From Epithemia pelagica (Eukaryota > Protista > Bacillariophyta), in assembly GCA_946965045.2 (NCBI GenBank), contig OX337234.1, positions 3,720,001 through 3,784,000 of the forward strand: a DNA stretch of 64,000 bases, given 5' to 3'. Every line of letters begins with the position of its first letter. Positions within the stretch are counted from its first letter, which is position 1. Under the pieces are notes generated by a model. The model saw only the letters and a list, made by a program, of their open reading frames with translations, was not told the origin of the DNA and searched no databases. This document shows positions 3,001-46,842 of this stretch, in pieces. Position numbers and translations under genes: made by a program.

Positions 3001-4761
3001 GGAGTCTTGAGGGCAGTACACAAAACTGACCTCAGCTGGAATGAGGTGCAACAAGCACTAGGTTACCTCATGTTTTTGAAACGAAAACGGTGTGGCAAGA
3101 TTAAAGGAAGAGGCTGTGCCGACGGACGCAAACAACGTGCGTACATAGAGAAGGAAGATTCGGCTTCTCCTACCGTGGCCACCGATTCTGTATTCATCAC
3201 TGCCGTCATTGACGCCCTAGAACAACGTGTGGTTGCTGTGGCAGACATCCCAGGTGCGTTTATGCACTCAGATATGGATCCTGGCGTGTATATGCGGCTT
3301 ACTGGACTAATGGCTGAGCTACTCCTAGAAGTCGACCATGAAGCATATGCCCCATATCTAACATATGAGAAGGGCGAGCCGGTTATATACGTGGAAATGT
3401 TGAAGGCTCTCTACGGGACGTTGCGTGCAGCTCGTCTCTTCTGGGAAAAATTGACCGTGGTGCTCAAAAGTTGGGGATTTCAAATCAACCCCTATGATTC
3501 ATGCGTTGCCAACAAAACAATCAACAACAAACAATGCACGGTAACTTGGCACATTGACGATCTGAAAATATCGCATGTGGACGGTGCCGTTGTAAACAAA
3601 TTTATTGAGGACCTCAAAGCAGAGTTCGGCCAGTTGGGAGAAATCTCTGTGTCGGAAGGGACAAGGCACGACTATTTGGGCATGTTCTTAGACTATGGAG
3701 AGGATGGGGTTGTGCAGGTGGACATGCGATCCTACCTAGACACCATTTTGATCTCGCTACCAAAAGAATGGATCGGTAAAGCACGGTCACCGGCTGCTAA
3801 GCATTTATATCATACGGACCCGAACTCTCGAAAACTCAATGAGGAGGAGGCGGATCGATTCCACAGTGTAACAATGCAGTTAGCGTACATGGCGCAAAGA
3901 GGACGCCCAGATATACGCACTGCTGTGGCCTTTTTGAGCACTCGTGTCATGAATCCAGACGTTGACGATCAGAGAAAACTCGGTCGGGTTCTCAAGTACC
4001 TACAATCAACCAAGGATCTGATCCTACGACTAGAGGGTGATGGATCTGGAACACTATGTTGGTGGGTGGATGCCTCCTTCGCTACTCACCCAGACATGAA
4101 AGGACAGACCGGCGGAGTAATGACTATGGGCAAGGGTGCCGTCATGACTGCCTCATCAAAACAAAAACTTGTGGCGCGAAGTTCAACCGAATGTGAATTG
4201 ATAGGCGTGCACGACGTGTTGCCGTCAATGTTATGGAGCCAGAACTTTCTGAGAGCCCAAGGACATGAAGTAAAGAACGTTGTCCTGCACCAGGACAATC
4301 AGAGCAGTATCCTACTGGAACGAAACGGTCGGTTGTCGAGCTCGAAAAGAACCAAACACACCAATCTACGATATTTCTATATCACAGATTGTATTCGCCG
4401 AAAGGACGTGAATGTGCGTTTCTGTCCGACGGATGAGATGATCGCTGACTTCTTTACTAAACCATTGCAGGGTCAAGCTTTTTATCGCCTGCGGGATATC
4501 ATCATGAATGTGGTCCCGAGTAGTAAGTACCACTCCTCGGCCCAAAGGAGTGTGTTGAGGATATGTGACCAGGCGACAAGCAGCAGCGAGCAGACGACGA
4601 GTAGCAGCGAGCAAGCAGCGACTCAAGAATGTGATTCGGAAGCAAAGGATCCAAACTTGAATGAGGAAGATGCCGAAGCATGGACTTTAGTCCGTCGACG
4701 TGGCAAAAGCAACATTAGGCAAGATGAACAAGCAAGTGTTCATTCTAAGGAGATTCCGTAG
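1..4761 (+). CDS. Copia gag-pol polyprotein (5'-partial; frame is open from base 1)
   Basis: Protease WLLLDNQSTVDII; integrase TVDILHV / LLADGAF / HVGDIERYIRTVKER; RT KGRGCADGR, ADIPGAF, LKALYG, WHIDDLKI; RNase H WVDASFA, SSTECEL, QDNQS, IADFFTKPLQG. Confidence 0.95.
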   Translation, partial: EAINDERDGVALLKLIKQTTFTFDSGRIYKLVGRDKLKEEFYGLKRRNNQTLHSYYEVFRAKVKVLNEVGVVLYDKDLVEMIAKKNGRDPPSSIDRDEAQERCVAIRFIRTCGHREYEAHLQNMFLDGHKDVYPATLADARAILDNRMTGKQKQPNQNQQTPTENATGMAYHTQELDDSNESQAASTLTGNSHMTTNSRQTQGRNGSGNNSRGREQGSTGSGQSRGHESNQTQTNNNGELNETNESTRLQDTHRDSLQYSFSASSSQASISPEWLLLDNQSTVDIIRDPTLLKNIHTAERPIMIQSHAGRRQISKQGLLPGYGIVWHDPEGPANIISLNNARTRFSIKYDSENGNTFNLFDRSSGRLKHQFLPSQDGLFYMDTSRMQSSFITTVNDNESAYSQDEVYRAKLARSLMAKIGRPSTRDFVHIIRNNLLPNTTITVDDVKRAEKIYGPDLGSLKGKTTRRKSPVVDSSQTVPPRIKEEHKDVTLTVDILHVNNIPFLATTSRKLHFGTMEAMANTTDDDVMNSLRRVVAIYRRGGLRPRMLLADGAFCSEKMKTELQLIGVLLNPTARDEHVGDIERYIRTVKERMRCVYNTLPFKEIPKVMIIEMAKFATFWLNSFPHRLGISQSESPRLLVTGEQVDFNKHCRFEFGQYVQCHEEHDNSMAPRTIGALALRPTGNRQGSYYFLSLVSGRVITRNHATALPMPQEVIQRVHQLARAQNMQPGLAFGNRDNRILWMDQDNDLYNEEDDESYINEEQDDIELRYDDDMIENELVDAVNNPDYVDHEEDVNGEPAINPMFGPDDQHMEIQGVGDPLAGELDELNGPEIEGVEADGELPIHPMAEDDGSVVPEEAVMDVEEDVGDNKGELAGGEDMEEGQDIQDIDANDANEGTEDNSEADPVRQQQQQQQQQQHRYNLRPIRERSYAHRYGHSFACIDTLKGGRYDGILRDGVLFLVASEVNQATPQMPMKKGIKLFGNKGVAAVKVEIQQLHDRGVLRAVHKTDLSWNEVQQALGYLMFLKRKRCGKIKGRGCADGRKQRAYIEKEDSASPTVATDSVFITAVIDALEQRVVAVADIPGAFMHSDMDPGVYMRLTGLMAELLLEVDHEAYAPYLTYEKGEPVIYVEMLKALYGTLRAARLFWEKLTVVLKSWGFQINPYDSCVANKTINNKQCTVTWHIDDLKISHVDGAVVNKFIEDLKAEFGQLGEISVSEGTRHDYLGMFLDYGEDGVVQVDMRSYLDTILISLPKEWIGKARSPAAKHLYHTDPNSRKLNEEEADRFHSVTMQLAYMAQRGRPDIRTAVAFLSTRVMNPDVDDQRKLGRVLKYLQSTKDLILRLEGDGSGTLCWWVDASFATHPDMKGQTGGVMTMGKGAVMTASSKQKLVARSSTECELIGVHDVLPSMLWSQNFLRAQGHEVKNVVLHQDNQSSILLERNGRLSSSKRTKHTNLRYFYITDCIRRKDVNVRFCPTDEMIADFFTKPLQGQAFYRLRDIIMNVVPSSKYHSSAQRSVLRICDQATSSSEQTTSSSEQAATQECDSEAKDPNLNEEDAEAWTLVRRRGKSNIRQDEQASVHSKEIP

Positions 4762-5030: not shown

Positions 5031-6132
5031 AACTGGAGACTGGGAATCAACCTTGATAGCAGTGATTCGGGATTTATTCTTGCTTGTCAATGTCGAAGAG
5101 AAATACATGTTACCAAAATCGGGAAGTGCAATGGACACTTGTAAACGCTCCAGGAGACGCACCAGCTCCAAATATTGCCAGCTATTAACTGTCCCTTTTC
5201 TGTGTTGCGCCACTTCCTGAATTTGCTCCAATTGTCCATTTCAAAGTGGCAACATAGGACTTAAGCGTACCAAGACCACAGTGTGAAGCAATCCGCAACA
5301 AGGGAAATGTTGTTGTCCATTTCTGGGGCATTCAACTATGGACACTGACGACACTGATACAATGGACCAGAACCCAGAGACCACTGTCGCCAATTTCTTA
5401 CTGGATCCACAAAGACTTGCAAAGTCATGTCATCCTGCAAAAGACGTAACTCAGTCGATGACAAAAGAGCTCCAAGCAAAACCCCATGTGATTAATAACT
5501 TGCTTTGCGGCGCACAACAGGCTTGCACCAAACGCATCACCACTTATTAGCCCCTCATATATCACCATCACCTGTGTTCCAACTATTCAAAAGAATCCAG
5601 GATTCCCAAAACCATGCTATTGAAGAACCATGCATGTGGTCCTCCTATCGCAACTAGTCTTGAATTGTCTTTCGTTACGAAAGGCCATATTCCTTTCACC
5701 ACCGTTTTTCGACCTCAACGTAGCACTTTTCTTTGGAGATGATTCCCTCTATCTTGCAGTTGTTTGTCGAGATATTGCCTTTTGTGGCGTAACCGTTTTG
5801 CGTCCCCAGAACGGTCCACCAAAACGCTTTTACTGTTATAGGTTTGGTGCTTTCCCAGACAATGGCCAAAGCTCACGACGAAGACGCGACTGAGTGTTGC
5901 CTGTTTTCAATCCATACGTCTTGTGTTGGAAACCAACCCCTATTCTTCCAGCGACCATCTAATCCGCGTGGAACAGTGCTAGAGGTGCTGGGTTCCGTCC
6001 CACCACGTCCACGTCCGAGACTGATGAGAGTCATGGCTTCTTTTGGGAACCATGTTTTCCTTGGAGAATCCTATTTGGTGCGAGTCTTGCTGGTAAGATG
6101 GTTTCTCCTGTGGTATCCGCCAATCGTTTGAA

Positions 6133-6939
6133 TCATACATGGTCAGAGGCTCTCGAATTGTCCGAGGCGTTGGAGTATGGAGAACATATAATACAGTACC
6201 TTTTGCCATGTGGACCCTGGAGGTGGTTCTTCGATAAGCCCACATATGGCTGGAACAGAAAACAGCGCAATGGGTAGGTATTCTGAATACACGACTGTCC
6301 GTGGACCGTATCGGGCAACAAGGCTGGCACACCACCTTTCAAGACTTGCACATCGTCTTGGGTCAAGGCACTCGTGGGAGCCGACGAATCCTCCTTTTTA
6401 TTGGTGACCAATGTCAGTGGCAAATAGGCTCGATCGGCTCCAAAGAGTGCCAGTCGTTCCGTCCAATAACGACACAGTCGTTGCGCCACGGCCCACAAAT
6501 CGTAGTGACAATACCGGACAAAGTGCACCGGGTCCGATTCCAATAAAATCAGGTCCACAGGTGCCTGTTGATAAGCGGCTCGGTCCGACCAGGGCAAACT
6601 CTGAATGACAGCATGAACATGGTGTCGCACCCGATCGCGCAGCACCGGCAATTGCGACAAGTCGTCGTTTGGATTCGTATTATTATTATTCGTGTGGTTG
6701 GGATTCGGTGGCAAGGGTGCTGTGGGTGGGGGTTCCAAGGGCGGTGGATAGACCGAGGGATGGGTCGATGGAGGTTGCAAGGTGGTTGTCGTGTTGGTTG
6801 TTGTGGCGGCTGTGGCAGTCGTTGTTGAAACGCGAGCAAGACGTTCCAGCGATCCTCCTTCATTCGGTTGTTGTGGTTGTTGTTGTGGAAGGGAGGATCC
6901 ACCTCCCGCACGCGCCGCCGAGAGTCGATATGGATTCAT
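6133..6939 (-). CDS. CRAL-TRIO-like N-terminal domain protein; paralogue of the gene split at 14190/28885; 3' part probably spliced or degenerate
   Basis: LSQLPVLRDRVRHHVHAVIQS...ESDPVHFVRYCHYDLWAVAQRLCRYWTERLALFGADRAYLPL aligns by eye with 28885-29270. A basic coiled-coil remnant (KRLRHKRQYLDKQLQDRGNHLQRK) lies downstream at about 5745-5830. Confidence 0.6.
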   Translation of the reverse strand: MNPYRLSAARAGGGSSLPQQQPQQPNEGGSLERLARVSTTTATAATTTNTTTTLQPPSTHPSVYPPPLEPPPTAPLPPNPNHTNNNNTNPNDDLSQLPVLRDRVRHHVHAVIQSLPWSDRAAYQQAPVDLILLESDPVHFVRYCHYDLWAVAQRLCRYWTERLALFGADRAYLPLTLVTNKKEDSSAPTSALTQDDVQVLKGGVPALLPDTVHGQSCIQNTYPLRCFLFQPYVGLSKNHLQGPHGKRYCIICSPYSNASDNSRASDHV

Positions 6940-7153
6940 GGTGTGGCTGCTGCTTCTTGAAGAAACGGAACAAAGAAGAATGAACCGCACTGTCGGTTGT
7001 CCGTCAGGAATCAGAGTGCTTGGTGGACTGTGGCTAGCAGGAATCGGTATATATATGTAGAATGGAGAGTTTGGCGCTTTTGGTTCTTGGTGTTGCTGGC
7101 TGGTTGTGTGGTGTTTAAACTACCAATTCCTCTCGGAATAGAGAAGGATGGGA

Positions 7154-7325
7154 TTCCTTCCTTCCTTCCTTCGTTTGTTTGTTTGATCGTTCGTTCGTTC
7201 GTTCGTTCGTTCGTTCGTTCGTTTGTTTGTTTGTTTGTTTGTTTGTTTGTTTGTTTGTTTGTTTGTTTGTTCGTTCGTTCGTTCGTTCGTTCGTTCGTTC
7301 GTTCGTTCGTTCGTTCGTTCGTTCG
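7154..7325. repeat. Compound tetranucleotide microsatellite (TTCC)n(TTTG)n(TTCG)n
   Basis: Directly visible; it generates the spurious ERTN/KQTN ORFs in the track. Confidence 0.97.
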
Positions 7326-8785
7326 TCGTGTGACTCGTTTGGGATGGGCAGTCGGTAAACCAAAAAAGTTGCCGAAAGAGACTGTGACACACCTGTTTGC
7401 AACTGCAAAAGTCACACCAACAGGAGTGATGATTCAGTAGAGTTGTGATTGCAGTTCGATCCAAAAGACAAAAGAGTGTGGTGTAACAAGATATTTTTGA
7501 TCGATTACATTCATGGAATACTCGTATGTCTGTAGAGTGAGCGACAATGGATCCTTCGCATCCACAAAATCGCCACGCCCATCACAGACATTACACAAAA
7601 CGAAAACGAAGGCCATAGGCCATCCCTGTGCGTCATGATGAGCAGATGTTTGACTCATCTATGGAAATAGTAGAGGGTAAAGTAGTGTAAACTGTGCGAG
7701 AATCGAGTCTGTGGTGTCGTCGCGACCCAGAGTGGGTGGCACTACACGGTCGCGGAGCATCTGTGTGACATACCATCATCCCAGTCGACGATCCTCTCAT
7801 TTTTTTTGGTTCTCTCTCTCTCTGTTGTTGTTCTTGTTGTTGCTGTGTTGGTGCCTTATTGTGTGCGGATGGATGGACAATTGCTTCTTCTCTGTATAGA
7901 GAGTGGCCGCAACTCCCGTGTCTCTCGCCATTCTTGTGTTTCTCTGGTGGTCGGGGTTCCAAACTGTCTGTGGTGTTTGTGATGGTTGCTACCTAGGTAG
8001 TTTGTGATGTGATGGCTCGATTCTCGACACATGATTTCCCTACGACTCCTACACCATCCTCATCCTCATCATCATCTTCCTTCTTCTTGCTCTTCTTCTA
8101 GCCAAGAACGTCTTGTTCCATTTCCCAGCACGTCACGCCACAAAAAAACAACAAGAATCACAGTCACAGCCACCACACGGTCGAACCGTCGTCGTAGTAG
8201 GAGAGTAAGGGACCATTCTTCTCCTCCTCCTAACGACGGCCTTGGCAGCGACCACGACCCGTGCAGTCGTTTGTTTGTTCGTGCGTCTTGTGTGTGGAAA
8301 GGACGACGACCACATGAACACCAACAACCACAAGCCTCCGACGCTGCTCCTTTGCTGATACTGCGGTTCCATGGTCGTATCGTGGTTGCAGAATGACACC
8401 ACCACCCACAACAAACCGAATGCATCGGATCCTATTTTAACGAGTGGAGCGTGGGATGCGCACCAACACGACGCGAACCCAAAAAGGGTGGCAGGACGAC
8501 GACAGTACGGCATGTATACGTCCCGGCACAGGTCCAAGGACCCAGGGATAATAGGTAGTCCACCCGAGTCACGGACGACGCATCATGATCGGGACGAATC
8601 CGACCAAAGCCATTGTGAGAAATGACCCCAGAACCCCAAGTCGTCGTTTGGATGATGGTTTCTAGTATAGTATAGAGTTTCGGGATAGTTTACAGTATCA
8701 AAGCAATGAAACAGCTACAACAAAGTGTGAAACAACGATGGCAATCAGCAACCCCCATGTGGTGTCTCTTTTGGTGTGGTGGTGG

Positions 8786-40241: not shown

Positions 40242-40761
40242 GTAGAGAATTGAACCGTAACAACACTAGCCAGCATCACCACCACACACCACAGTCCAGA
40301 GGCAACCACCCAAACGAAAAAGGCAAGAGAAAGGCAAGAGAGAGAGAGAGACTGGAGAGCTGGTGCTATTCCAGAGACAACAACCAACAACAACGAAAAA
40401 ATGAGAGGCTCTGCGAGCATCGACTGCGAGGATGGCATGTCACACAGAGTTTCCGCGACCTATTATAGTGCGACCCATTCTGGTCGACGTCGGAATTCCT
40501 TATCCTATGTGGGGCCCGAAAAAGCGGTTCGTCTATGTGGCCCCTTGTCACAAGCGGGCTGTCCCCCCGCTCCATGATTCCGAGTGTCATGGCGTCAGGG
40601 CAGTCGGTCGGCGTCACGTTGCGACGTGCGTGCGGCAGCTGGAAGAATAGGAAGCTACGGGAAAAATAAGATGTCATGGATATTACTAGATACCTAGACA
40701 AAAGCGCATGGGTTGTTACTAGAGGAAAGCTTCTTATACCATCAATTATGCTATAGGCTCT

Positions 40762-41691
40762 CTACTCATAGTCTTGAACGTCGTCATCATTGTCACCACC
40801 ATATCCTTCAGTTGCACGCTCAACCATGCAAGAAATGAGCATGACAAGTGTAGGTAAGGCAGCCCCACTGGGCCCATCCCCATCGAGCTTGTAGAACATG
40901 GGCCGAGACACAACATCACCTTTGATGTCAATCATGTTATTCTCGACCTTCTTCTCTAGGTGGATTGTTAGGTTGGTGGTGACGACTTTACTGTCATCCT
41001 GTTTGAGTTTCTCTTTTGTTTCAACGATGCCAGCAGCTTTGGCACTTGAAGCATTAGAAGCGACGCCACCACCACGATCCAACTGGCCCTCGAAAAGCCG
41101 CTGAGGGTCGAAAAGATACTCGGGCCATTTGTGGACGATCCGAATCTTCATACCACCAGGAGCAATGGAAACTGACATATCCTCCGCCCGTGTTCCCGAT
41201 GGAAGAAGAACGAAGAAGCAAAGGCGAAGATTCTTATCCTTGTCATGCCAATAAGAGTTCATCGTTGGCCAGTAGAGGTCTCCACTGGCATGCATCTTAC
41301 CCTTCTTTGTCCCCCCTGTCTTTGCAGAGCGTGGTGTTTTCATGCTGACACTTGCACCACCAGGAGTGGGAGAACCAAAGAATGCAGTGGCACGACCAGC
41401 TTGACCCATCAATCCACCCCCCGGAGACATAAACCCAACATGCTCTGCCTCTCCACGCCGGGCTCCCGTTGAGAGAGCCACATCCTCAGCAGCTTTCAGG
41501 TTGCGTTGGGCGTTCTTCCACGAGGAGCTGAAGTTCTGGAACTTCAGCACCTCTCCTTCCGAAGCTTCGTAGACTGCCTTGTACTGTTCTCGGGAGGGAT
41601 TAGGAGGCATCTTGCCTTCACTAATCTGCTTGCGAATGTATTCGCCTTGCTCCCCCTTCCAATTAAAAGCCTTTGTAGATTTCTTTGCCAT
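40762..41691 (-). CDS. Transposon accessory ORF A: putative helical DNA-binding N-terminus plus an alpha-crystallin/HSP20-like domain
   Basis: Likely start MAKKS. YWHDKDKNLRLCFFVLLPSGTRAEDMSVSIAPGGMKIRIVHKWP resembles sHSP beta3-beta5 strands; fold assigned by eye only. Confidence 0.7.
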   Translation of the reverse strand: MAKKSTKAFNWKGEQGEYIRKQISEGKMPPNPSREQYKAVYEASEGEVLKFQNFSSSWKNAQRNLKAAEDVALSTGARRGEAEHVGFMSPGGGLMGQAGRATAFFGSPTPGGASVSMKTPRSAKTGGTKKGKMHASGDLYWPTMNSYWHDKDKNLRLCFFVLLPSGTRAEDMSVSIAPGGMKIRIVHKWPEYLFDPQRLFEGQLDRGGGVASNASSAKAAGIVETKEKLKQDDSKVVTTNLTIHLEKKVENNMIDIKGDVVSRPMFYKLDGDGPSGAALPTLVMLISCMVERATEGYGGDNDDDVQDYE

Positions 41692-42072
41692 GTTGTTTGA
41701 TTGTTTGCTGCGTTCCTCTTGCGGTTTGGGAGTCGGCGCTTTGTGAGCCACCAAAGCAACAAAACCACATGAGTCCATCTGGTCCCTCTGGGATCTGGGA
41801 GGCGGAGAGAGGAGAGACCATACTGGGTGGATGGCATAATTCTTCATTCATGGTTCAAGTGAAGACAAGATTGGTCGTTTGAAGGGCATATCATGGGCAG
41901 TGGTATTCGTTTTTGTCTGGACTAGAATATAGACGATAGTTAGCTTGCTGTCATTCAAAGTGTCTGTCTTTCCTACACAAGTTACTATGAGTCATTGTAT
42001 GGCTGTATCTTAGGCGTGTGTTATGGGGAGTAGGGCGATTGGATATTGGATAGTATGAAGGTATTATTACTC

Positions 42073-42996
42073 CTAAGCATAACCAGCAGGCATCGAAAAA
42101 TGTCTGTCATCGTAGTCAACGTCGAAAAGAGTGAGTTCTCCATTTTCGACAGAAAGCTGAACAATCACAGCAACTGCCCGAAACATGGCAGAGTGCTTGT
42201 CCAATGAATGCTTTAAGCATTCTTTGATGCACTTCCATTCCTTTAGGCGCCTGTTGATTGTTTCATGTCTGTTGCGGACGCGCTGTCGTAGCTCCACGTC
42301 CGCTGCTGTCCGCGAGTTCACTTCGGGCGTGAGAATTTTTGTAGGTTCGCCCACATATCCATCATCCGCTTCTGCCTTCTCGTTGTCATGTAGGAAAGAC
42401 TTCATCGCGTGGCGGAAAATTTTAAGATCTGGCCAACGCCCGCAAGGGAAGGGTCCATGCACCCACACAATGTCACGGCTGCGGATGGACAGGCCAATCT
42501 CCCAACGAGTTCCAGGGCCGTTGAACTTGTGCGAAAACCAACCCTTCCAAAAGGGCCGATAACTGGGAACCCTGGTGTCTGTTCCATCCACAGAAACTGT
42601 AGAATCGTTGTAGATGTCATTGTTGAATCGATTTTCCCAGCGAATTACAAGCGGTTCGAGAAACGAAAGCCCACGGACAAAATGCCAGCTCCACTTCCGA
42701 AATGTCTTGGGGTCCACTCTTCCACCATCCTCCCCTCCAGCATCCTTAGCCATATCAGGCTCATCTGCGTAGGTCCGAAGAAGCATGAGAGCCCACAAAA
42801 GATGCTTGGGTTGTGGATTGTTTGGCATCTCATGCTCTCGTGCATCCTCCAAACGAACCCATAGGATGCTGCACATGGATGGCGAGGCCCCAAACTTGTT
42901 GGCCCAGAGACGCCGAAAGGTCTCCGTCTCGGAGATTCTCTTGCGCAAGATGCTTGCTCCCAGTTCCTGAAACAGCTCTGGAGCAATGGCGTTCAT
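42073..42996 (-). CDS. DDE transposase (DDE_Tnp_4-like, Harbinger/ISL2EU/IS5 group)
   Basis: LLWALMLLRTY...KTFRKW helix-turn-helix region; catalytic VSVDGTD, EADDGYVG and RHETINRRLK. Confidence 0.9.
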   Translation of the reverse strand: MNAIAPELFQELGASILRKRISETETFRRLWANKFGASPSMCSILWVRLEDAREHEMPNNPQPKHLLWALMLLRTYADEPDMAKDAGGEDGGRVDPKTFRKWSWHFVRGLSFLEPLVIRWENRFNNDIYNDSTVSVDGTDTRVPSYRPFWKGWFSHKFNGPGTRWEIGLSIRSRDIVWVHGPFPCGRWPDLKIFRHAMKSFLHDNEKAEADDGYVGEPTKILTPEVNSRTAADVELRQRVRNRHETINRRLKEWKCIKECLKHSLDKHSAMFRAVAVIVQLSVENGELTLFDVDYDDRHFSMPAGYA

Positions 42997-43223
42997 CGTC
43001 GTTTTTGTTGGATTGTTGGGAGAATTGTGTGTGAGGCTGAAGACGAATCGTGATATCGTTGATGAGGTAAGACACACTACTTAGAGTACCTACAGTAGAA
43101 CTTATGAATACGTAAGTAGTGTACATCAGTATTCTGTACACCCGATGGATATCCATGGATACCCACGATACTCACAAAATCACAGATTTCCCGTGGAAAC
43201 TGGGAATCCCAACAAGTCGAATT

Positions 43224-43537
43224 TTCCGACGCCATTTTCTCAGGCCTTGAAGGACCTCAGACAAAACCACACCAGGATCTGTTAGACCCCAATGGACCCT
43301 CAAGATCCCCCATGAAACATATGGGATTGGGGCATCGTGGCTCTCAGGATATGCTTGGGAAAGTGTGGATATCAACGCTTTTTTGATGATTTCACGACTT
43401 TCCCAAGCATATCCTGAGAGCCACAATGCCCCAATCCCATATGTCTCTTGGGCGATGTTTAGGGTGCATTGAGGTCTAATGGATGCTGGTATGGCTCTGA
43501 GTGAAAAGCTCCACAGCTCGAGAAAATGGCGTCGGAA
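43224..43537. other. Long imperfect fold-back (314 nt) inside the transposon
   Basis: 18-bp perfect outer stem (43224-43241 / 43520-43537), interrupted middle pairing, and a 48-bp inner stem with one mismatch (43317-43364 / 43397-43444). Confidence 0.92.
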
Positions 43538-44102
43538 TAATGGGAATGGTGGATACCCATGGACATCATGGATATCCACCATTCCCATCGTTTCATAGTT
43601 TTGCCATGGAGGTGCGAGAGCGCCGGCAGAGACCCATGTACAATAATACGCACTACTTCAGAACCATAAAGTGACACATACGAGTAATCCAAATAGTATT
43701 GTACAAATCCGGCCCATCCGGGATCTTTCTGGAATATATATAAAATACAAATATTGCCTTGGGATGGCTTCGTTTTATGCCTCTTGCGATATACTCCGAC
43801 GTCCGTTGACGTGGTGTTCACATACAAATTTTCAATTCTAAGGCTTAAGTCTCGACGCTTTATACCTACGACTAGACACGACCAAGCGGGGTGATTGAGA
43901 TGAAGAAACTACTGTGTGGTTGTGTGGAGCGAACACACTTTGCAACAAAAATGGTGGCGGCATCTCATTTTGTCTCATCTTGTGTTTTCCATTCGGCCAT
44001 TGCGCCTCTACCTTTCGCACGGCTACTATCCATCAATCAAACGCTTTGTCTCGTCTGAAGCTCATTTCTTGCTGATTGTTGGGTTTCTTCTTTGTAAGTG
44101 AA

Positions 44103-45921
44103 ATGCGTTTTCAAGAAGTCTTTGAAACAATGCGTCAGAGGTTTGACAATGGGCTTTGGGATCCTAACTTGTGTTCCAAAGCCCATGTTGAATACTTGTT
44201 TCATGAGAATGGGGGATTTGGAGTCGATTTTGAATCATTTTCCACCCTTTATCGTCGTGCTTGTTGTGAGGAACTCACAACCAAATGGAAGACCACTCGT
44301 GAACGAGAGAGGACTGCTGCTCTTGGAGTTGATGCTCCTCCTCCTCCTCTTGTTGCGAATCCTGTCGCAGGTGTGTTTGATTGTTGGTGTTTTGAGTTGC
44401 ATGCAGCTTTCTCACATCATTGTTGTTTCAGTTGTGCCAGTCAACATGTTTTCGTCCTTTCGTGACAATGTGGAGGAGTCAGACGACGATGAGAGCTATG
44501 ACGATAATGAGGAAGAAGACGACGGGGCGGAACAACAAGACGGCTATGCGGAGCAGGTCTTTGGAAGCACAGGTGGTGCTGGCATGGGGAAAGGCGAGGG
44601 AGGAGGGGATGGCTACGTTGTCCTGGGTGACAGTGCCCCCAATCGTGATGCTTTCCTAGACGAAAAAATGAAGAAGATGTCGATAGCCCCCCAAAAAATG
44701 GTGGCTTTGGTTGATGGGCCAGTATCCCCGTTTCCAGTGATCTTTTCATCTTGGAAAGCCCATGATGGGCAGAAGCGACTCTCGGTCGCAGTGAATCTGC
44801 TTTCGGGGGTGGTGCCAAAGGCAGTCGCCCCCTCTATTACGAAGAACTCAGAGATCCAACTTACTCTGAAGTGGCCAAAGGCAACAACAAGTGTGGCACA
44901 GTTTGTTCCTGTCAAGTTCCTCGCCCAGCTTCACCGGTATGGCCACACAGCTATTGGGCCTCCCCGCAATGCTGAAGAGATGAAGACCTACCCCTTCCAG
45001 ACTGTGCCTGTTGTCTCCAATCTGGTCGTTCAGATGGACAAATGGAAGAAGCGGTCGAATGTGCCCGGGGAGGATATGCGGCCAAGCATGACAATCAACC
45101 TCAGTGCCCCTTGTCAGCTTGACCCGATCCCAGTTGGGAACTCCTTTGATTTGATGGGCCTGGAGGGAGATCGTGTGACGCTGAAGAGCCACGGATACTG
45201 GTGTGGCGCTCTTCTGTTGGAGTGTGAAGGACAACGCAACACCTTCCGTAAGCCTGTGGGGCCAGACCACTACACATTTGTTTGTCGGAGCAACGGAGGA
45301 TGGGCGAGTCAGCAGGATACAGATGAGCTAATGGAGGATGCAAACGAAAGCAACAACAACGCAAACAATCAGCGACCAAAGCGTACGCGCACTACAAACG
45401 CTACATCAACCACAATTGCAGCCAATGATCTCATGCAAGAGAATGAGATGCTGAAGAGTCGCCTCGAAGAGGTGCAATCTGCGCACACCGAGGCCGTGAA
45501 GCAGATGCTCTCGGCCGAGCAGTATGCCGAAAGTTGCAAGAAAGATGTCGAGTTTCTCCGTGCATCTGTAGAACTCAAGAAGCATGCTTTGGAACAAGCC
45601 AAGGCTGAGGCGGAGACACATGCTCGGGCAGCCCAAGAAATGTCAAACGACATTCACACAAAATTCGCTGGGCATGCACGTTCTTGCATGGAGATGGCTC
45701 GGCAAGCTGTAATCAGCACCGAAAAATGTCTGGATGAGGCGAACAAGGATTTGAACTCTCCAGGAGTCACCACTCACGCAAACGCTGCACGAGAATATGT
45801 GAAAAAGACGGTCCAGCTCTATCAGAAGCACTTTGGTGAGGGAACTGCAGTCGTCGGGAACCAGGATCGAAACATGGAGACAGCAACAGCAGTGAGCGAC
45901 TTTGACGACTTTGATAATTAG
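44103..45921 (+). CDS. Transposon accessory ORF C (intron 44371-44431): helical N-domain, acidic linker, alpha-crystallin-like domain, coiled-coil tail
   Basis: A phase-1 GT...AG intron joins MRFQEVF...PVA to VVPVNMF in frame. PFPVIFSSWKAHDGQKRLSVAVNLLSGVVPKAVAPSITKNSEIQLTLKWP resembles ORF A. Confidence 0.7.
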
Positions 45922-46842
45922 GTACCATATAACAATGACTACTAGTTTCTACATTCAATTGATTCTCTAAGAGCTCTTGGTCTTCTCGGTGGAATTGTGA
46001 TGAGGCCGCAAAGCTGTAGACTAGAGGACGATGGAGTCACATAGCGACTCCTTAGGGATGCCCTTGGATAACCATGCACATCTCGTTTTTCCCGTAGCTT
46101 CTAGATCTCACCCCTTATCCTACACGCAACATTCCGAGAGTACTGGCGCCGGGGCAGTCGGTCGACCGTACCCTAGCGGGTAGGCGCGGCAGCTGGAAGA
46201 ATAGACTATTCCCTTTTCCCTTATCCTACACGCAACAGAAAATCTCTGCTTTTCTAGTGTATGGAGTGTGCTCACTTTTCGAATAGTTTGTATTCTCGTT
46301 GGTCCATCGGGTTTTGGAAATGCACAAGGCGACATCTACAAGAAACTCTAGACCTCTTTTGTTAGATATTATTGACTTGAGAGCGGTGCGTGTCGAAAAA
46401 CAACCCTCTAACTACTAGCTAGGACCATAGCAATGATAGGAATCTCTTCTTTTGTTATCGGCGATCCACAAGCGAGCAAAGATACCCACAGAGGAGGACA
46501 TTCAAGTTTCGGATTTGGGGGAGAGTTCTGTTGACAGTTGACAGTTGACACACCCGCAATGGCACAAAAGAGACGGCCATGATTGATGAGTGCAGATTAT
46601 TCTGTACTTCCCATTGTGTATCGGCAGATTGCCCTCACAACAGAGCAAGTTTTGGATTCTGTTGACACTGCGACCTGTGACACCCAACCACATGCTGCGA
46701 TCTGCAGTGTGTGTATTCGATGGTGCCAAGCTGTCTTTCTTCCCAGTGTGTGGTCGGCAGTCGGCAGAGGTGCGCAACAAGTCATTCTCTTCGTGCCCTC
46801 ATAGTTATGGGTGCTGATCCTTTTTCTCTTTCTCTCATCATC

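Follow-up and report, generated by a model that had tools for sequence, protein, structure and literature searches.

Descriptions of autonomous DNA transposons usually stop at TIRs and genes, and little attention is paid to the non-coding DNA inside them. The locus analysed here raises the question of what a long fold-back in such internal DNA might do. It lies in a window of 64,000 nt from the diatom Epithemia pelagica (contig OX337234.1, positions 3,720,001 to 3,784,000; all coordinates below are those of the window unless another locus is named). The original prediction described the structure as a pre-miRNA-like fold-back of 314 nt (43224-43537) inside a Harbinger-type transposon and offered alternative roles, i.e., a small-RNA source carried by the element itself or a structure acting as DNA at a bidirectional promoter.

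The host element, whose limits were taken from a self-search of the genome (60.5 Mb, 23 contigs), is a PIF/Harbinger element of a raphid pennate diatom with a length of 5,451 bp (40651-46101), and its assignment to the Harbinger type was confirmed by a DDE_Tnp_4 transposase, 24-nt TIRs, and a 3-bp TSD. For a host formyltransferase, the closest clusters were those of Bacillariophyta. The parts of the element are as follows:

40648-40650, no strand: left TSD, TAG, standing directly beside both element ends
40651-40683, plus strand: left TIR and inner-TIR motif, 24 nt GAAGCTACGGGAAAAATAAGATGT plus GATGTCATGGATAT; homology among the five copies begins here
40762-41847, minus strand: ORF1, accessory protein of 361 aa, on the same strand as the transposase and downstream of it
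42073-43077, minus strand: transposase ORF (DDE_Tnp_4), likely start ATG near 42996, giving 307 aa
44098-45921, plus strand: ORF C, 607 aa, or 572 aa from an ATG near 44203; divergent from the transposase and lineage-specific
46065-46101, minus strand: right TIR (46078-46101) with inner-TIR motif and a 10-mer copy, TGGATAACCA at 46065
46102-46104, no strand: right TSD, TAG, from the flank comparison of copies

The two TIRs are 92% complementary over their 24 nt. Five full-length copies were found, 99-100% identical to each other and at unrelated insertion sites (the four others on contigs 17, 1, and 9 and, as a second copy, on contig 7). Perfect 3-bp TSDs are present in three of the five (TAG, TCA/TCA, and ACG/ACG), a fourth copy has AAT/TAT, and the fifth is ambiguous; these TSDs differ from the classical TWA. 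The transposase matched PF13359 in Pfam with 25.5 bits (cut-off 24.8) and had 123 homologues at an E-value of 1e-40 or lower, many of them with PF13359 and including proteins of the diatoms Mayamaea, Fistulifera, and Seminavis; its start methionine is conserved in P0004, P0005, and P0015. ORF1 is open in four of the five copies and 50-74% identical in relatives; it had no Pfam match and gave only a weak CS/HSP20-like lead (Atlas score 0.78). ORF C was found in the host family, the contig-11 relative described below, and three database proteins only, and carries no Pfam domain. For PIF/Harbinger elements, a second ORF for a Myb/SANT-like DNA-binding protein is expected; neither this nor another DNA-binding domain was found in ORF1 and ORF C (Pfam for both, Atlas for ORF1). 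The near-identity of the copies, the TSDs, and the encoded DDE_Tnp_4 transposase suggest that the element is young and probably active.

A repeat search recovered fold-back arms of 166 nt each, 78% complementary and 12 nt apart. The parts of the structure and its immediate surroundings, none of them assigned to a strand, are the following:

43146-43165: two adjacent 10-mer copies, TGGATATCCA/TGGATACCCA, in the left hairpin flank, from the motif scan
43209-43374: left palindrome arm, gapless against the left arm of the contig-11 relative (L018) with 60% identity; the core described earlier starts at 43224
43365-43396: apical loop of 32 nt, containing a 10-mer copy at 43366-43375
43387-43552: right palindrome arm, from the arm-to-arm alignment and the alignment with L018; the core described earlier ends at 43537
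43390-43398: TTTCACGAC block, at the end of the loop and the start of the right inner stem; the same block is found in L018
43540-43588: second small hairpin with 22-nt arms, 95% complementary, directly after the main fold-back

The predicted architecture was recovered on reading the sequence and aligning the arms to each other: an 18-bp perfect outer stem (43224-43241 with 43520-43537), a mismatched middle section, a 48-bp inner stem with one mismatch (43317-43364 with 43397-43444), and a partly pairing 32-nt loop. The folding check that had been proposed was likewise passed, as the plus strand reached an MFE of -206.7 kcal/mol compared to -93.5 +/- 5.6 kcal/mol for shuffled sequences (z = -20.4; 0 of 100 as good). 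Folded as minus-strand RNA, the same stretch reached -221.3 kcal/mol (z = -22.2), i.e., 15 kcal/mol better. The small hairpin is made up of two copies of the 10-mer (43550 and 43569) and a TIR-like 14-mer, GATGTCCATGGGTAT, at 43553 on the minus strand. As for location, the spacer between the transposase ORF and ORF C, given as 1 kb by the original prediction, measures 1,020 bp, and the fold-back is indeed far from the TIRs (about 2.5 kb to either); counted from the transposase start codon, the palindrome lies 130-210 bp upstream, in the spacer that leads to the divergent ORF C. Also as described, the fold-back has no TSD of its own, since its flanks read ATT (left) and TAA (right) and no direct repeat of 2-10 bp was present at the arm ends.

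The fold-back is integral to the element. The original prediction had raised the cases that the hairpin might be absent from other copies or might occur as an independent MITE with its own TSD. Instead, it is present in all five copies and in a 99.3% identical copy of the element from an independent assembly (L040), which also shows that it is not an assembly artefact, and neither solo copies nor a TSD were detected: a genome-wide search for solo hairpin copies, run at E-values of up to 10, returned five matches, every one inside a full-length element. A dispersed MITE was rejected on the basis of these matches. For a search for compensatory changes, the five near-identical copies had too little variation (seven events, none paired); 41 two-sided changes were counted against the relative on contig 11.

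This relative (L018) has a transposase with 69% and an ORF C with 51% amino acid identity to those of the window family, and its transposase copy carries two stops. Its hairpin (4390-4548 with 4587-4745 of that locus) is also located between transposase and ORF C and has 159-nt arms with 97% complementarity, a 38-nt loop, and an MFE of -321 kcal/mol. The hairpins of the two lineages align without gaps and in a shared register, in which column i pairs with column 387-i; their identity is 59.6% in register compared to 21-30% off register. The TTTCACGAC block is identical in both, and the remaining loop is identical at 3 of 12 positions of the alignment. The spacer outside the hairpin could not be aligned between the window element and L018, and the synonymous sites of the transposase are saturated (pS 0.70-0.74; dN about 0.21). 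An in-register identity of this degree at saturated pS, with the remaining spacer unalignable, indicates that constraint acts locally on the hairpin, and on its primary sequence in addition to its structure.

The two arms co-evolve. Among 172 positions, 127 are paired in both lineages, comprising 84 unchanged pairs, 41 with two-sided changes, and 2 with one-sided changes. In slid controls, in which the partner was shifted by 1-3 columns (own script), only 1-4 two-sided changes were counted, and the co-evolution of the arms follows from this difference, with the covariation resting on two independent lineages with an intact hairpin. The 84 unchanged pairs (49% of the positions), retained despite saturated silent sites, are not what selection on structure only would predict for a 160-bp stem. 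Judged from its distribution, the hairpin is ancestral to at least three lineages, and its retention in a relative at saturated divergence indicates that the palindrome is probably a functional control element of the transposon.

The sequence around the palindrome was scanned for the palindromic 10-mer TGGATATCCA, allowing up to one mismatch. Eight sites were found in the 64-kb window compared to 2.4 expected, and no shuffle reached eight. Six of these sites are in the element, namely at 43146 and 43156 in the left flank, at 43550 and 43569 in the right flank, at 43366 in the loop, and at 46065 beside the right TIR. In L018, the 10-mer stands exactly at both hairpin bases, and altogether it flanks the hairpin in three lineages. 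The third of these (L038, L039, L042, and L043, from another assembly) has about 70% nucleotide identity. In L038, 15 sites of the 10-mer were counted compared to 0.9 expected, and two arrays with a 10-bp period comprise 14 sites; the centre between the arrays, about 350 nt long, is homologous to the hairpin and retains hardly any self-complementarity (arm-to-arm score z of about 2.4, MFE z of about -2). In the window as well as in L038, direct and inverted repeats of the 10-mer accumulate above chance close to the transposase promoter region. A possible link to the element ends comes from the inner-TIR pattern GATGT(N0-2)CATGGNTAT, which was defined post hoc and occurs three times in 64 kb, i.e., in both TIRs and in the right hairpin flank. 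The ends themselves carry one 10-mer copy (46065, beside the right TIR) in addition to this TIR-like 14-mer pattern.

A similar layout was found in other Harbinger families. Family E, with a length of 3,148 bp, at least 32 copies in this genome, and a transposase that is 34-41% identical, has in every copy a 223-nt palindrome of TGGGTCG repeats between the divergent ORF1 and transposase, and the motif at the palindrome centre occurs otherwise only in the two TIRs of that family (again a TIR-like pattern defined post hoc). In a relative from Mayamaea pseudoterrestris, two inverted GACATATGTC arrays surround 190 nt between divergent genes. Among metagenomic relatives with enough upstream sequence, about 6 of about 25 show arrays and/or palindromes at a distance of 60-650 bp upstream of the transposase; in one of the metagenomic relatives, L055, a unique palindrome is surrounded by GCAGTGCAGCGCA arrays. 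Not every family has the feature: of about 17 Harbinger families that were sampled in this genome, about 3 had a palindrome of 80 nt or more close to the transposase start. Across families, the modules are situated 130-300 bp upstream of the transposase start and usually midway between divergent genes. The recurrence of arrays with a central palindrome between divergent genes points to a general, undescribed control module of diatom Harbinger elements.

We put a probability of roughly 45% on the fold-back being the centre of a mirror-symmetric cis-regulatory module that would act mainly as double-stranded DNA. Among the roles offered by the original prediction, that of a structure acting as DNA at a bidirectional promoter has the most support, on the grounds of the family-specific motif arrays, the TIR-like site, the conservation of primary sequence, and the same layout elsewhere. 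The module would consist of the central palindrome (about 2 x 160 bp), the copies of the 10-mer on each side, and one inner-TIR-like site. Its two arms would represent head-to-head copies of one promoter/operator sequence, and the 10-mers would be putative binding sites of a dimeric DNA-binding protein, probably encoded by the element, since each family has its own motif and this motif seems to echo the TIR. That double-stranded DNA is recognized sequence-specifically is suggested by the family-specific palindromic motifs at helical-turn spacing, the apparent echo of the TIR, the primary-sequence conservation, and the consistent position. In this way, the two divergent genes would be transcribed in a coordinated and probably autoregulated manner. 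The complementarity of the arms would be maintained by correction of one arm from the other, either by gene conversion or by repair in a hairpin that is extruded or single-stranded; selection for cruciform formation may contribute, with negative supercoiling supplied by divergent transcription. Were a transposase mRNA to begin upstream of the hairpin, its leader would measure about 600 nt and include a stem of -220 kcal/mol and several upstream ATGs; given this burden, the translated mRNA more likely starts between the hairpin and the ATG, which would place the palindrome upstream of the promoter. We infer a promoter or operator function from position and motif architecture only.

Several observations run against a promoter. 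A symmetric promoter by itself does not need 97% arm complementarity over unique sequence, so that this reading leans on the postulated gene conversion. The right arm is about 650 bp away from the start of ORF C, much further than the left arm is from the transposase. Furthermore, the G:U bias on the transposase-sense strand hints at transcription through the hairpin.

The chief alternative, at the RNA level, is a long hpRNA source: both arms would be transcribed, most likely as the transposase-sense (minus) strand, into about 160 bp of dsRNA, from which a Dicer-like enzyme would produce siRNAs for Argonaute silencing of the element family. Silencing would be transcriptional or post-transcriptional and self-limiting, and in cis the stem would also block the translation of any transposase mRNA containing the hairpin. 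We consider this rather unlikely, although several observations are consistent with it. The combination of a long near-perfect inverted repeat and a short spacer is found both in the window (166-nt arms, 78%, with the 48 bp at the apex having one mismatch) and in L018 (159-nt arms, 97%), the predicted stems are extremely stable on both strands and were kept in two lineages with 41 two-sided changes, and the minus strand is the better folding one by the 15 kcal/mol given above. Wobble mismatches favour the minus strand as well (13 vs 4 in the window family; 18 vs 6 over both lineages, p = 0.023). This bias fits selection on a minus-strand RNA or transcription-coupled mutation, either of which implies leftward transcription through the hairpin; in family E, no such strand asymmetry was found (7 vs 7). 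Genes for a Dicer-like protein with two RNase III domains, for Piwi/Argonaute, and for several RdRPs are present in the genome. In Phaeodactylum, inverted-repeat constructs trigger silencing, and most diatom small RNAs map to TEs (PMC4247016). In addition, L038 with its decayed hairpin (transposase cluster with 91 members) has a higher copy number than the five-copy hairpin family, which would fit an escape from silencing, albeit anecdotally.

Other results argue against an hpRNA. Self-targeting siRNAs need complementary arms and not a conserved sequence, yet 49% of the pairs are unchanged at saturated dS. The two-sided changes lack the excess of transitions expected for passage via G:U intermediates; with 16 transition-type and 22 transversion-type changes, they resemble the overall spectrum (49:95), and this spectrum consequently does not separate RNA selection from gene conversion. 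Across lineages, it is the flanking, protein-site-like 10-mers that are conserved best and not the stem, and the motifs have outlasted the stem in L038. The palindrome-bearing family E still has at least 32 copies. Trans targets were not found either, in that the arms had no other genomic match at E-values of up to 10, a search of limited sensitivity that 20-24-nt matches could escape. The operator and hpRNA readings are not mutually exclusive. That the hairpin is transcribed in transposase-sense orientation and throttles its own family via Dicer/Argonaute siRNAs, as a built-in, heritable, self-limiting RNAi trigger, we judge to be unlikely; in a stronger version, the palindrome possibly does both, serving as a mirror-symmetric operator when DNA and as a silencing trigger when RNA.

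The palindrome could alternatively be a neutral by-product, i.e., an old inverted duplication without function, kept palindromic only by intramolecular gene conversion and heading for decay. The gradation of arm complementarity from 97% in L018, whose transposase has two stops, via 78% in the window to nearly complete decay in L038 is what sporadic homogenization with subsequent decay would produce, and the two-sided changes follow the general mutation spectrum. Such an origin is nevertheless improbable, because gene conversion between the arms does not slow the divergence between lineages, and the hairpin is the sole alignable non-coding island (60% identity, no gaps, same centre) where silent sites are saturated and the flanking spacer is unalignable. 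Long palindromes are, moreover, normally unstable, yet the one in the window has been retained in register, and analogous modules recur at the same position in unrelated families.

The structure being a fold-back, and the flanks of L038 being inverted arrays of a 10-bp repeat that look superficially Foldback-like, a MITE or Foldback-type element nested in a Harbinger ancestor and now riding along was also weighed. This is very improbable, as the 60-Mb genome holds no independent copies and the arm ends show no TSD; other Harbinger families have other motifs at the same position, which is not expected from independent nested insertions, and the motif appears to be shared with the host element's own TIRs.

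The likeness to a pre-miRNA, on which the original prediction had drawn, was not borne out. The near-perfect apical stem with bulged flanks would suit a miRNA-like gene giving one dominant small RNA aimed at host genes, and matches to miRNA precursor models of Rfam were obtained. These remained below threshold, however, at 20-40 bits compared to gathering scores of 67-80 (the best at 40.6 bits against 70), and they fell on both strands and on unrelated animal and plant families, which is the pattern of a generic hairpin similarity; no known RNA family was thus found in Rfam. A stem of about 160 bp is far longer than that of a pre-miRNA and of hpRNA size, the arms have no other match in the genome, and canonical miRNAs have not been validated in any diatom (PMC4247016), making a miRNA gene extremely improbable. 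There is next to no chance that the 138-aa ORF through the hairpin (43588-43172, minus strand) is a gene or a 5' exon of the transposase: it has an ATG and spans the whole palindrome, and tblastn found a homologous region in L017, but this coding reading was rejected on flat between-lineage substitution rates over codon positions (0.39/0.41/0.41) and stops in the homologous frame of L018, with tblastn matching in both orientations as a palindrome predicts, the transposase start methionine conserved downstream, and no Pfam match for the ORF.

Several known systems were compared with the module. Some DNA transposons are autoregulated via transposase-binding repeats that are subterminal or overlap the promoter: in En/Spm, 12-bp motifs for TnpA lie in direct and inverted orientation over the promoter and serve autoregulation, and in bacterial IS elements the transposase promoter is located inside an inverted repeat. 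The diatom module resembles these arrays in its short direct and inverted motif repeats near the transposase promoter, which are family-specific and may be related to the ends. It differs from them in being internal (2.5 kb from the ends) and between divergent genes, and in having at its centre a conserved, co-evolving, unique palindrome of 2 x 160 bp, with sites that are predicted. In phage Mu, the internal activation sequence/operator is located between divergent promoters, and the proteins binding to it share the end-binding domain. This region has in common with the diatom module that an internal site between divergent genes appears to share recognition features with the ends, which could couple regulation and transposition; Mu is, however, a bacteriophage with another transposase family and no long palindrome, so that the likeness would be functional only. 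Foldback (FB) elements have long TIRs made up of 10-, 20-, and 31-bp tandem repeats, and the inverted 10-bp-repeat arrays flanking the central segment of L038 are similar. Unlike Foldback elements, the module has neither independent mobility nor a TSD, and its arrays are inside a Harbinger element whose own ends the motif seems to match.

Among RNA-based systems, the maize locus Mu killer, an inverted duplication of MuDR that gives rise to a hairpin RNA silencing the family, is a rearranged single-locus derivative whose arms consist of transposase gene and TIR and which is transcribed by read-through from a flanking gene (PMC3440606). The diatom structure shares with it a transposon-associated long inverted repeat and a potential hairpin RNA against its own family. 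Unlike Mu killer, the diatom palindrome is present in every intact copy and in a diverged lineage, is not derived from coding sequence or TIR, and is conserved. The analogy to Mu killer drawn in the original prediction did not hold up, as no piece of the transposase gene or of the TIRs is duplicated in the arms. An origin of the arms from elsewhere in the element was rejected, since no similarity beyond short motifs was found. Drosophila hpRNAs, plant IR-derived siRNA loci, and MITE-derived MIRNA genes served as further comparison loci (PMC10004981, PMC9641971). As in host hpRNA/endo-siRNA loci, long near-perfect inverted repeats with short spacers occur in a host with RNAi machinery; those loci belong to the host or derive from dispersed MITEs, whereas the diatom hairpin is a single-position part of an autonomous element. 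In sum, the hallmarks tested for a MITE, for a curated miRNA family, and for a duplication of the Mu killer type are missing from the structure, and at the sequence level it appears to have those of an hpRNA locus and of a binding-site array. A limited literature search returned no description of a conserved internal palindromic module in PIF/Harbinger or diatom transposons.

Of the non-coding DNA of the element, only the internal palindrome of 350 bp is conserved across saturating divergence. As an operator, it would offer a handle on how two-gene Harbinger elements coordinate and limit their expression, and diatom engineering could gain a compact regulatory part that works in both directions. 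As an hpRNA source, it would mean that the transposon encodes a device for its own silencing, and it would supply a defined natural substrate for the RNAi of diatoms, which is poorly understood; should the self-limiting hpRNA prove true, it would be the first natural hpRNA locus defined in diatoms, conserved across lineages. As the family looks young and is probably active, either reading is directly testable with existing methods.

Two accessory open reading frames accompany the transposase gene in the Harbinger element:

40762-41847, minus strand, accessory ORF (ORF1)
44098-45921, plus strand, accessory ORF (ORF C)

Harbinger elements are normally expected to encode a Myb/SANT domain, and no such domain was recognisable in ORF1 or ORF C. 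For ORF1, Atlas returned only a weak lead to CS (HSP20/p23-like) domains (score 0.78), and the Pfam matches of ORF C were weak and of coiled-coil type only. In the same genome, the second element copy on contig 7 (~2.997 Mb) carries a 7-bp deletion in ORF1 (window-equivalent positions 41762-41768) and the copy on contig 17 (~2.25 Mb) a TAA within ORF C; all three ORFs are open in the remaining element copies.

To the left of the element, the window holds a dispersed repeat of ~144 bp (40507-40650; at least 40 matches genome-wide, 84-99% identity), which terminates precisely at the point of insertion (...CTGGAAGAATAG|). As partial units related to this repeat lie to the right of the element (46105-46240), the Harbinger sits within a short tandem of such units.

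On contig 11, at 2.01-2.06 Mb, a stretch spanning at least 7.3 kb occurs in three copies (loci L015, L016, and L017/L018; 99.5-99.9% identical), each containing the left part of the diverged relative. Its transposase has two in-frame stops, common to all three copies. Homology of the two truncated copies stops 79 nt short of where the hairpin lies in the full copy (position 7311 vs. 7390 of L017), which places a duplication breakpoint near the palindrome.

Family E, a separate Harbinger family of this genome, is represented by an element at ~4.25 Mb on contig 3 (L025, 2367-5514) and at least 31 further copies. The element is 3,148 bp long, its copies are 95-100% identical, and its TIRs of ~30 nt start with CTGGGAGCTGGGGTAATCCTGAGCAG. 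Between the transposase and the divergent ORF1 lies a 223-nt palindrome of TGGGTCG repeats; the motif GAGC(N1-2)GGTCG occurs only in both TIRs and at two sites at the palindrome centre. The Mayamaea pseudoterrestris locus (L041, GCA_027923505.1) carries two transposase genes in tandem (6013-6949 and 7239-8100), both of the same Harbinger clade, and its inverted GACATATGTC arrays are located only upstream of the first.

The apical loop of the hairpin bears, on its 3' side, an asymmetric block, TTTCACGAC (window 43390-43398; 4576-4585 in L018, the contig 11 hairpin locus), that is identical between both hairpin lineages, while the remaining loop is unconserved (3/12). This block may serve as a specific recognition site at the tip of the hairpin.
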